Source: Piromyces finnis finn
Taxonomy: Eukaryota > Fungi > Neocallimastigomycota
Reading direction: 5' to 3'
Assembly: GCA_002104945.1 (NCBI GenBank)
Contig: MCFH01000024.1
Location: 620,001-684,000, forward strand
Length of the DNA stretch: 64,000 bases
In this document: positions 59,480-61,672 of the stretch, piece by piece
Layout: each line of letters starts with the position of its first letter
Numbering within the stretch: position 1 is the stretch's first letter
Program-made: the position numbers and the translations under genes
The notes under the pieces: generated by a model
Told to the model about the DNA's origin: nothing
Seen by the model: the letters and a program-made list of their open reading frames with translations, nothing else
Database searches by the model: none

Positions 59480-61672
59480 TTATTTGTGCCAGAAACTGTT
59501 AACAAAAGCAATTCTAGATTCGAACCAATCAGCAAGATAATTAGCAGCTTCCTTTTGAGTTTTACATTGCTTAGCACCTGGAGAAAGTTCAGAAACAAAG
59601 GATTGATTTTGAATAATATTATTCCATTTAGCGTAATTACGATCAAATGCAGCAGAGGCAACTTGAGTTTGAGTATGAATCATATCAACAATTTTGTTAA
59701 GAACACCACTATCATAAGCCTTTGTCCATCTGCTTCTAATAAGTTCTTGGTACCAATCTTCATACATAATTACAGCTAACCATGGGTTAATCTTTTGACC
59801 TCCCATATTACCATTATCTGGAATAATATTAGCTGCAAAATGACCTTGACCATTAGCACAACGATCCTTGTTACCAAGACCAGAATCGAAATCCCATGGA
59901 GCTTCGAATCTAAGTTTCTTTGAACCATTTGGACCAAAGTCAACATCTAAGTAGAAACTTGAGTAATAAAGATCAGCATCACAAGTCATTTCACTAATAA
60001 TAAATAAATCAGCTAATGATTCTGGTTCTAAAACGTTTTCAATAGCTTGTCTTGGAGTTAATTCTGGAGCATCAACAACATCAGAGTAGTTATTGTTGAA
60101 CTTTAAGGTCTTTTGATTGTAAGAAGCTTCATACATAATTTTGTAAGCATTGTTAACAAAATTGGAAATGAAGTCGTTTTGAGCTTGACTGTAAATATCG
60201 TTCTTAATATTCATATTTACACCATTACCTCCCATATTAAATTGTCTCTTTTGCATATTATTACCCCAGTTGAAACCTCCCCAGTTGTTTTGTTGGTTAT
60301 TATTTTGTCCATTATTTGGTTGTTGTTGATTACCAAATCCTGGGAAATTCCATCCACCTTGATTTTGATTACCTTGGTTAGCTTGACCATTTGGTTGTTG
60401 GTTTTGTTGTTGGTTTTGTTGTTGGTTTTGTTGTTGGTTTTGTTGTTGGTTTTGTTGTTGGTTACCCATTCCTGGGAAATTCCATCCACCTTGATTTTGA
60501 TTACCTTGGTTAGCTGGATCATTTGGTTGTTGATTTGGTTGTTGATTTGGTTGTTGGTTACCCATTCCTGGGAAATTCCATCCACCTTGGTTGTTTCCAG
60601 TATTACCACCGAAATTCCAGTTACCACCACCAAAACCGCCGAAACCGCCGAAACCACCAGATGGTTCAACAGTCTTTCCGCTTCCACCATTTCCATCGAA
60701 TGGCTTAAGTGGTGCATTGTTGTTGAAATCAACCTTAAAGGCTTGAATTGGATCTTCATACATAGAATAACCAGTATCATATTCAAGTAAATAACCAATA
60801 TCAGTACCAGTGTAGTTTTCTTCACCCTTAGTAATTTTAACTCTGTGTTCATTAATTTGTTGTTGTTCAGCTAAAAGATAAACACCAAAGTATTCGTTAT
60901 TAATTTGTAATTCAACTAATGTACCATCTGATGAATAGTAACCATCTGGATTAAGTAAACCACGGGAGAGATCGAATGATGATTTGTTTCTAAGCATAGA
61001 TCCATCCTTGTATTCAGCTAAAAGAACCCAGTTCTTAAACTTATGACCTTCATTAAGACCAAGCATACTTTGAGATTCGTCAAAGCTAATACGGAGACCT
61101 TTTTTAACGTAATTTGAAGTCCAGTTACCACGAACTTTAACCTTACCACTAGCGGCATTAACAACCTTAGTACCATCAGTATCTTCTACTGTAATAGTAC
61201 AATCTTCATAAAATGGTTCTGGTGGCATTTCTCTTCCCATATATGCTTGTTGAGCAATATGTTTTTCAACTGGTTTAGTTGCGAAATCAGAATTTCCACT
61301 GCTACTGATAAATGTTATAACTGGGATAACTCTTTGTCCATTTATAGCACTACCTTGTGGAACCTGGTTTCCTTGATTAGAATTGTTGCATGAACTTTTA
61401 ATTAAACACCAATCATTGTTTTCAACACCCCAATTACCTTCAGCATCTGTATAATAGACCTTACATCCATTACACCATGGATATTGAGTTGGATTAACAG
61501 CATTGTCAAAGTTGCATTTATTAATTATGCACCAATTGTTGTTTTCAACACCCCATTTACCTTCGGCATCTGTATAGACTACATCACATCCATTACAACA
61601 TTCATAATTTGGATGACATTGAGAAGCAAAGACACCAACAGATAATAAAGAAGCAAATACTAAATATTTCAT
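59480..61672 (-). CDS. Secreted CotH-family protein kinase with two N-terminal fungal dockerins (CBM10-like NCDD), intronless
   Basis: Signal peptide; dockerins CCNGCDVVYTDAEGKWGVENNNWC and WCNGCKVYYTDAEGNWGVENNDWC. CotH motifs KVRGNWTS..KKG.RI, WVLLAEY.D.S.LRN, YFGVYLLAEQ, GYLLEYD, CDAD...SSFY and APWDFDSGLGN. Confidence 0.93.
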   Translation of the reverse strand: MKYLVFASLLSVGVFASQCHPNYECCNGCDVVYTDAEGKWGVENNNWCIINKCNFDNAVNPTQYPWCNGCKVYYTDAEGNWGVENNDWCLIKSSCNNSNQGNQVPQGSAINGQRVIPVITFISSSGNSDFATKPVEKHIAQQAYMGREMPPEPFYEDCTITVEDTDGTKVVNAASGKVKVRGNWTSNYVKKGLRISFDESQSMLGLNEGHKFKNWVLLAEYKDGSMLRNKSSFDLSRGLLNPDGYYSSDGTLVELQINNEYFGVYLLAEQQQINEHRVKITKGEENYTGTDIGYLLEYDTGYSMYEDPIQAFKVDFNNNAPLKPFDGNGGSGKTVEPSGGFGGFGGFGGGNWNFGGNTGNNQGGWNFPGMGNQQPNQQPNQQPNDPANQGNQNQGGWNFPGMGNQQQNQQQNQQQNQQQNQQQNQQPNGQANQGNQNQGGWNFPGFGNQQQPNNGQNNNQQNNWGGFNWGNNMQKRQFNMGGNGVNMNIKNDIYSQAQNDFISNFVNNAYKIMYEASYNQKTLKFNNNYSDVVDAPELTPRQAIENVLEPESLADLFIISEMTCDADLYYSSFYLDVDFGPNGSKKLRFEAPWDFDSGLGNKDRCANGQGHFAANIIPDNGNMGGQKINPWLAVIMYEDWYQELIRSRWTKAYDSGVLNKIVDMIHTQTQVASAAFDRNYAKWNNIIQNQSFVSELSPGAKQCKTQKEAANYLADWFESRIAFVNSFWHK
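60210..60660 (-). repeat. Coding repeat insertion in CotH: 3x GGWNFPG(M/F)GNQQ units and 12-bp QQQN/QQPN repeats
   Basis: tgggaaattccatccaccttg occurs three times (~60341, ~60474, ~60570), with tggttttgttgt repeats between copies. Confidence 0.9.

Follow-up and report, generated by a model that had tools for sequence, protein, structure and literature searches.

A predicted kexin-type processing motif closes a low-complexity insert within the kinase fold of a dockerin-bearing CotH protein from Piromyces finnis

In this study, we analyzed a gene for a CotH-type kinase on the reverse strand of a 64,000-nucleotide stretch of the Piromyces finnis genome (contig MCFH01000024.1, positions 620,001 to 684,000; hereafter the window). 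The gene is one unbroken open reading frame (ORF) of 730 amino acids, and its predicted product is a secreted protein with two fungal dockerins and a CotH kinase domain interrupted by a low-complexity insert. The insert ends in Met-Gln-Lys-Arg-Gln-Phe, and a motif of the same type, [LMV]-x-K-R-Q-[FWY], was found at the end of the insert in all 15 representatives of the fungal clade to which the protein belongs (clade I). Clade I was represented by the window protein and 14 cluster representatives, with Piromyces, Neocallimastix, Anaeromyces, and Orpinomyces as the named genera (at least four). On balance, we favor an overall reading in which a transferred bacterial kinase received an expanded loop, a selected kexin site, and maturation into two chains.

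The N-terminus, a Lys followed by a hydrophobic stretch, was judged by eye from the sequence to be a signal peptide. This signal-peptide-like N-terminus is kept in the fungal orthologs and suggests putative entry into the secretory pathway. Tandem CBM_10 matches follow (PF02013, E 7.8e-24, two stretches), and the pair also matches the double dockerin of Piromyces equi Cel45A (PDB 2j4m, E 5.7e-13). The Pfam CotH model (PF08757) scores 89.2 bits (gathering threshold 23.8 bits), and its match is broken in two, the first stretch covering amino acids (aa) 178–299 and model positions 1–109 of 322. A single-sequence phmmer search against the PDB missed CotH, which profile and fold searches recovered. 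The best Foldseek matches of the predicted structure were Bacillus cereus CotH 5JDA and 5JD9 (E 6e-9, probability 1.0). VIA-align superposed model residues 115–730 on 5JD9 with a Z-score of 26.9 and a root-mean-square deviation of 3.0 Å over 337/358 residues, and the next folds were PI4KIIalpha (Z 11.5), CtkA (10.6), and Fam20C (6.9). The CotH kinase fold is thus complete, and the insert is an addition to it. The original prediction of a dockerin-bearing CotH kinase is thus borne out by domain and fold matches alike.

Two AlphaFold models were built from alignments of 29 and 123 sequences. In the 29-sequence model, both CotH halves fold with a predicted local distance difference test (pLDDT) score of ~85–95, and aa 319–482 have low confidence. 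The 123-sequence model has a mean pLDDT of 77.7 and a predicted template modeling (pTM) score of 0.73. In this model, both halves reach 90–99, the conserved loop at aa 319–341 becomes ordered, and pLDDT stays below 50 over just one long segment, aa 342–477, which ends at R476|Q477; the C-terminal half has values of 84–99 from aa 481 on. In the models, the two halves fold around the insert, a point that the original prediction had proposed to check. The insert is located after the last β strand (E293–298) and the ordered conserved loop of the N-terminal, β-rich half, and it precedes a short strand and a long helix, with which the helical half and its catalytic Asp motifs begin, in agreement with the placement first proposed.

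Among the 123 homologous sequences, D565, D567, W593, and D594 are invariant, as are K190/K191 in the N-terminal half. A profile search aligned WDFD with PWDYD at 5JD9 residues 244–248 and the N-terminal half with 5JD9 residues 45–125. From the motif alignment, D565/D567 and WDFD are candidate counterparts of D228 and D251 in Bacillus subtilis CotH. The D228Q and D251A substitutions abolish the activity of the B. subtilis protein (PMC7821199). A conserved loop, N319...D326-G-x-G-G-S-G-K-T334, ends just before the insert; its pattern, N-x-x-P-L-x-P-[FY]-D-G-x-G-G-S-G-[KR]-T, is shared by bacterial and fungal homologs. Residues 327–334 of the window protein fit the Walker A pattern G-x4-G-K-T, although this loop is probably not a true P-loop because the Lys and one Gly are not invariant.

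Delimited by sequence, the insert covers aa 338–476 (139 aa, window 60661–60245), and delimited by AlphaFold confidence it covers aa 342–477. Its overall size is thus ~136–139 aa, shorter than the ~150 aa given in the original prediction, whose description of the segment as low-complexity stands. All of the motifs quoted there were located: GYLLEYD at aa 293, GGFGGFGG, three copies of GGWNFPG, QQQN, NWGGFNWG, MQKRQF, CDAD at 564, and WDFD at 593. The insert consists of 53% Gln plus Asn, 22% Gly, and 11% Phe/Trp, with one Asp. K475 and R476, whose codons lie at 60250–60245 as predicted, are its sole basic residues and form the sole KR dipeptide in the entire protein. The best 80-residue window of the insert contains 54 Gln/Asn. 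With at least 30 Gln/Asn per 80 residues taken as the mark of a prion-like segment, the window insert counts as Gln/Asn-enriched. At the DNA level, the insert contains nested tandem repeats (Table 1), which indicates that parts of it were expanded recently by slippage or unequal crossover. Two other-frame ORFs of 225 aa (forward strand) and 211 aa (reverse strand) also overlie the insert (window 60113–60852). We rejected them as genes and regard them as stop-free by-products of the low-complexity repeats.

For position counts, the 15 clade-I sequences were anchored on KR. P2 Lys, P1 Arg, and P1' Gln are present in 15/15 sequences. P4 is Leu in eight, Met in five, and Val in two; P3 is Lys, Arg, Gln, or Phe and never Asp or Glu (15/15); and P2' is Phe in 13, with one Trp and one Tyr. 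The flanks of the motif (P5–P17 and P3'–P8') have an entropy of 2–3 bits, and only 35% of the columns in the folded parts are invariant within clade I. The codons of the motif vary synonymously (Lys AAG/AAA, Phe TTT/TTC, Leu TTG/TTA), indicating that the constraint acts at the protein level. A Gly/Ser/Asn-rich spacer of variable length (6–10 residues in clade I) separates KRQF from the first C-terminal strand, so that the motif stands in no fixed register with the fold. As judged from these alignments, the motif behaves as a short linear motif and not as a packed structural element. In the specificity described for Kex2, P1 is Arg, Lys is preferred at P2, P3 is free with Asp disfavored, and P4 is aliphatic, with Leu among the residues named (PMC8528282; PMC3777899). 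The window sequence M-Q-K-R and all 15 clade-I sites fit this published pattern. K475, R476, and Q477 all lie inside the segment with pLDDT below 50, consistent with a predicted accessible and disordered site. A kexin also appears to be available, as the original prediction presupposed: the genome has three P-domain (P_proprotein) loci, and one ORF (L031) joins Peptidase_S8 to P_proprotein, the kexin/furin signature. The comparison suggests that the KR site is probably under selection as a kexin site.

Table 1 Features of the CotH kinase gene and its predicted product in the window.
Feature	Window position	Strand	Basis or remark
Coding sequence, secreted double-dockerin CotH kinase (predicted)	59480..61672	-	Complete, single exon; 730 aa + stop
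Signal peptide, aa 1-17	61622..61672	-	Putative cut after VFA; Lys then hydrophobic run
Two fungal dockerin (CBM10) modules, aa 18-50 and ~66-100	61373..61621	-	Pfam PF02013
N-terminal β-rich half of CotH fold, aa 113-341	60650..61336	-	pLDDT 90-98
Conserved pre-insert loop, aa 319-341	60650-60718	-	
Low-complexity G/N/Q/F/W/P insert, aa 342-476, predicted disordered, fungi only	60245..60649	-	pLDDT, composition
Tandem repeat in insert, 132-nt period x1.8	60320..60559	.	Tandem Repeats Finder; 91% identity
12-nt x6.2 repeat, nested in 132-nt repeat	60390-60463		Tandem Repeats Finder; 98% identity
9-nt x2.6 repeat	60633-60655		Tandem Repeats Finder
Predicted kexin motif M473-Q-K-R|Q-F478, P4 to P2'	60239..60256	-	15/15 clade-I representatives
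C-terminal mainly helical half, aa 477-730, predicted chain B starting Gln-Phe	59483..60244	-	pLDDT
C564-D565-A566-D567, candidate catalytic-loop Asp motif	59972..59983	-	D565, D567 invariant
W593-D594-F595-D596, candidate metal-binding (DFG-like) motif	59885..59896	-	W593, D594 invariant

Outside the fungi, the closest homologs of the window protein are CotH proteins of ~530 aa from rumen Oscillospiraceae, Ruminococcus, and Lachnospiraceae, with 51–55% identity over the whole CotH domain. These bacterial homologs (P0021–P0120) have lipobox N-termini (L-x-G/A-C) and are therefore surface lipoproteins. The pre-insert loop and all catalytic motifs are common to the rumen Clostridia homologs and the window protein. 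At the position of the insert, the bacterial proteins have a loop of only 15–19 aa without a low-complexity insert or a KR-Gln-aromatic motif. The fungal homologs form two clades beside the bacterial group, with Shimodaira–Hasegawa-like approximate likelihood ratio test (SH-aLRT) support of 97% for clade I and 100% for clade II; clade I is monophyletic and includes the window gene. Bacterial CotH xenologs that gained CBM_10 in Neocallimastigomycota have been reported independently (PMC11291939). The rumen Clostridia are likely the donor lineage of the gene by horizontal transfer.

In the genome examined (56.5 Mb, 232 contigs), 124 Pfam matches to CotH correspond to at least 110 loci, nearly all of which give contiguous matches. 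Many are clustered in tandem (for example, C172:270-303 kb, C68:44-57 kb, and C182:282-292 kb), and a 1752-aa open frame on C68 holds three CotH matches. The window gene is the sole member of its bacterial-like subfamily in this genome. The next paralogs share 28–30% identity in the C-terminal half, lack dockerins, and have short loops. A contig search for sequences encoding the window protein itself returned no record. In a Neocallimastix-like ortholog (P0004; L065 on a Joint Genome Institute contig, JGI 3300030641), the tail of a convergent clade-I-like CotH gene was found 60 nt past the stop codon. Judged from these sequences, the subfamily is locally duplicated in a Neocallimastix-like genus and single-copy in the genome of the window. 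The ends of the ortholog contigs were also inspected for poly(A) tails; one contig has a convergent second gene and is therefore genomic DNA.

Across clade I, the inserts are 102–174 aa long and cannot be aligned with one another. They contain 8–66% Gln/Asn, 6–41% Gly, and 0–19% Asp/Glu, and their length differs even inside 90%-identity clusters (proteins of 674–697 aa, and of 702 and 717 aa). The only steady feature of their composition is an aromatic content of 7–15% (near 10%); the aromatic median in other low-complexity segments of the genome is 4.7%. The best 80-residue window contains 15–69 Gln/Asn, with fewer than 30 in 4/15 representatives, and two of these four inserts are 19% acidic. 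The label "prion-like" used in the original prediction therefore describes the window copy and, on these sequence comparisons, is not a conserved property. In the sister clade II (P0014–P0019), the loops are 40–72 aa long with 22–41% Asp/Glu, contain Ser-Asp-Asp-Glu runs and no KR, and end in a conserved Tyr where clade I has Phe. An acidic insert of this kind could be a substrate-mimic or autophosphorylation segment.

Similar low-complexity sequence links CotH to C-terminal dockerins in paralogs of the same genome, either as GFGGFGGFGG-(QG)n-FPGG or as Asn runs punctuated by QW (L050 and L051, G000:C182:281157-289038; L024, G000:C222:22226-25480), with no dibasic site after the linker. The composition of the insert is therefore that of the organism's common linker material. 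A genome-wide rule of a low-complexity segment followed by KR was tried and rejected, since only one weak case was found among 53 other long ORFs. In this case (L039, G000:C157:572419-576345, + strand from locus position 1504), a CotH-domain protein continues into two near-identical ~135-aa modules (YDIIKEGS...), each preceded by a Thr/Ser-rich linker ending in G-K-R. P4 of these sites is Ser or Thr, a weaker match to Kex2.

The window protein can be compared with several known systems. The Bacillus CotH spore-coat kinase (5JD9/5JDA; PF08757) has the same atypical kinase fold with an aligned WDxD motif, but shares only ~15% identity, belongs to the spore coat, has no signal peptide, dockerins, or insert, and is not proteolytically split. 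The rumen Clostridia CotH lipoproteins share the catalytic motifs and carry a lipobox in place of the signal peptide and dockerins of the fungal protein. The dockerin-CotH proteins of anaerobic fungal cellulosomes (Haitjema 2017) come from the same group of organisms and combine the same pair of domains. The window protein differs from the other fungal members in that its dockerins are N-terminal and its low-complexity sequence lies inside the fold and not between domains. An insert in a kinase fold is not without parallel: the class III/V receptor tyrosine kinases (PDGFR, KIT, and VEGFR) accommodate a long, poorly ordered insert after the N-terminal half while the fold stays intact. The likeness is architectural only, because these kinases belong to an unrelated family, are cytoplasmic, and use the insert for phosphotyrosine docking, with no processing site. 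With respect to processing, the nearest counterparts are the Kex2-processed K2PP effectors (PMC8528282) and Ywp1 (PMC6258133), secretory proteins in which a disordered segment precedes an aliphatic-x-K-R site, as in the window protein. Processing of these counterparts takes off an N-terminal pro-domain, whereas the predicted site of the window protein is located in the middle of the fold and would give a two-chain catalytic domain.

We propose the following pathway for the origin and maturation of the window protein. The ancestral gene would have been gained from a rumen Clostridia lipoprotein by horizontal transfer, after which the lipoprotein anchor would have been swapped for a signal peptide and two dockerins. 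A tolerant surface loop between the two halves would then have been lengthened by replication slippage from host-type Gly/Asn/Gln/aromatic linker sequence, and clade I would have gained and strictly kept the aliphatic-x-Lys-Arg|Gln-aromatic motif at the C-terminal edge of this segment. In the late Golgi, kexin would cut after Arg476 and convert the 80-kDa chain into chains A and B. Chain A (aa 18–476; computed mass 51.0 kDa, or 50.7 kDa with the basic residues trimmed) would carry the dockerins, the N-terminal half, and the low-complexity segment as a free 135-residue C-terminal tail. Chain B (aa 477–730; 29.0 kDa) would comprise the catalytic half and begin with a Gln able to cyclize to pyroglutamate, followed by an anchoring Phe. 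The two chains would probably stay together as one kinase fold. The cut, made during late secretory transit, would then mature or gate the enzyme and would also release the formerly tethered loop as a sticky tail.

The original prediction assumed that cleavage would separate the two lobes. In the model, both halves pack with confidence into a single fold (pTM 0.73); they are therefore expected to stay associated, and a two-chain enzyme that remains associated is at least as likely as lobe separation. In Candida albicans Ywp1, the Kex2-cut propeptide likewise remains strongly bound to the core (PMC6258133). The conserved Cys residues are C158 in chain A and C564, C605, and C703 in chain B, so that two disulfides among these four would require an inter-chain bridge. 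Since Kex2 does not require Gln at P1', we infer from its invariance that the new N-terminus is itself under selection, with pyroglutamate protection as the obvious candidate. The P2' aromatic residue is positioned where model confidence recovers and may anchor the new chain end. It is also conceivable, as speculation, that cleavage is timed to the ATP-containing late secretory pathway. A more specific version, in which the insert is the pro-linker of a convertase-split kinase, with the kexin site as its one sequence-specific element, and a secretion-timed cut in the late Golgi creates a pyroGlu-Phe N-terminus beside the catalytic half, switches activity on or off, and frees the aromatic-rich 135-residue tail on the dockerin-bearing chain, is tentative and has rather less than an even chance of being correct.

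Several points weigh against two-chain maturation. KR is absent from clade II and from all bacterial homologs, which indicates that the kinase can exist without processing. KRQF stands at the exact edge of the fold, where structure or contact with a ligand could account for its conservation, and the end of the insert at R476|Q477 is itself an AlphaFold prediction. Cleavage after Arg476 is read from the sequence, and our literature search found no measurement of kexin specificity for Neocallimastigomycota. The original prediction also named the signs by which a neutral linker would be recognized, and several of these were found: the inserts are hypervariable, bacterial relatives and distant paralogs have none, and the loops of the sister clade are acidic and KR-less. 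The insert and its terminal KRQ recur at this loop in every clade-I representative, a recurrence that the original prediction had set as its own test.

The most serious alternative is that the insert is never cleaved. It would then be a neutral, slippage-expanded loop, with the KRQ-aromatic motif as the first structured element in contact with the fold, the nucleotide phosphates, or an acidic substrate. The hypervariable length and composition of the inserts, their recent tandem repeats, and the use of similar sequence as an ordinary linker in paralogs all fit such a loop. Model confidence climbs directly past Q477, and F478 may pack on the domain; moreover, the bacterial loops already have K-K or K-x-D before the same strand, and clade II, which lacks KR, retains an aromatic residue at the corresponding position. 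This explanation is nevertheless unlikely in our view, because the variable spacer of 6–10 residues leaves the motif in no fixed register with the fold, K475, R476, and Q477 all fall in the segment with pLDDT below 50, and an aliphatic P4, with P3 variable but never acidic, reproduces the Kex2 subsite pattern, which a structural role does not predict. At the opposite extreme, the insert might be an unrecognized intron or an assembly artifact missing from the mature protein. Low complexity alone speaks for this possibility, which we rejected as extremely improbable. The insert is in frame without stops, and its guanine plus cytosine (GC) content is 40%, compared with 34% in the remaining coding sequence and 10–13% in the non-coding flanks. 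Orthologous inserts of differing length stay in frame across independent genomes and metagenomes. Furthermore, 91–95% of the sampled words of the gene were found in four small runs from the same organism that are only guessed to be RNA, although splicing would remove 19% of the stretch with the insert and limit this share to ~81%; one genuine metatranscriptome contains 39% of the words.

Two further explanations retain a functional insert or a functional cut. In one, self-assembly is the main function, and an aromatic-sticker, Gln/Asn/Gly-spacer prion-like module makes cellulosomes condense, associate in an amyloid-like manner, or adhere to plant cell walls, with KR being secondary. The 54 Gln/Asn in the best 80 residues and the 11% aromatic residues of the window insert are as expected for such a module, and the aromatic content of clade-I inserts is steadily above the median of other low-complexity segments in the genome. 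However, Gln/Asn varies between 8 and 66%, two orthologous inserts are 19% acidic, the inserts cannot be aligned, and similar segments occupy simple linker positions in paralogs. In addition, an AT-rich genome (21% GC in the window) favors Asn, Gln, and Lys runs by mutation alone, and we regard a primary role in self-assembly as improbable. In the other, KR is cut extracellularly by a trypsin-like protease of the rumen or the fungus, either for turnover or to release the catalytic half from the cellulosome. KR is the sole basic pair of a long segment predicted to be disordered and exposed, and any Arg/Lys-specific protease would find it first. An aliphatic P4 and a Lys-specific P2 kept in 15/15 sequences are, however, kexin-specific and not trypsin-like, and a site that merely invites degradation would be expected to be lost and not retained; extracellular cleavage of this kind is more improbable still. 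Taken together, these comparisons leave selection for a kexin site, with maturation into two chains, as the reading we favor.

Among the dockerin proteins of anaerobic fungal cellulosomes, the CotH proteins rank as the second-largest class, yet recent literature still calls their cellulosomal role "not clear yet" or describes them as "without any defined function." In a literature search on CotH-dockerin proteins, Kex2, anaerobic fungi, and Piromyces finnis, whose coverage did not extend to Lillington 2023, neither the insert nor the site was described. What appears to be new here is a lineage-specific and, by sequence comparison, comparatively well-supported processing motif inside the catalytic fold of a known family. 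The conserved convertase-type motif provides a testable handle on a protein family of undefined cellulosomal role. It also matters for heterologous expression: the predicted site would remain unprocessed in Escherichia coli and be processed in yeast hosts with Kex2. The history of the gene would illustrate how a bacterial gene is adapted to the eukaryotic secretory pathway, with dockerins in place of an anchor, host-type linker sequence in a loop, and a eukaryote-specific processing site. If the more specific version holds, in which the cut switches activity at secretion, this protein would rank as the first secreted kinase with zymogen-like gating by a convertase, and its processing would be the first defined post-translational maturation step of a fungal cellulosome component.

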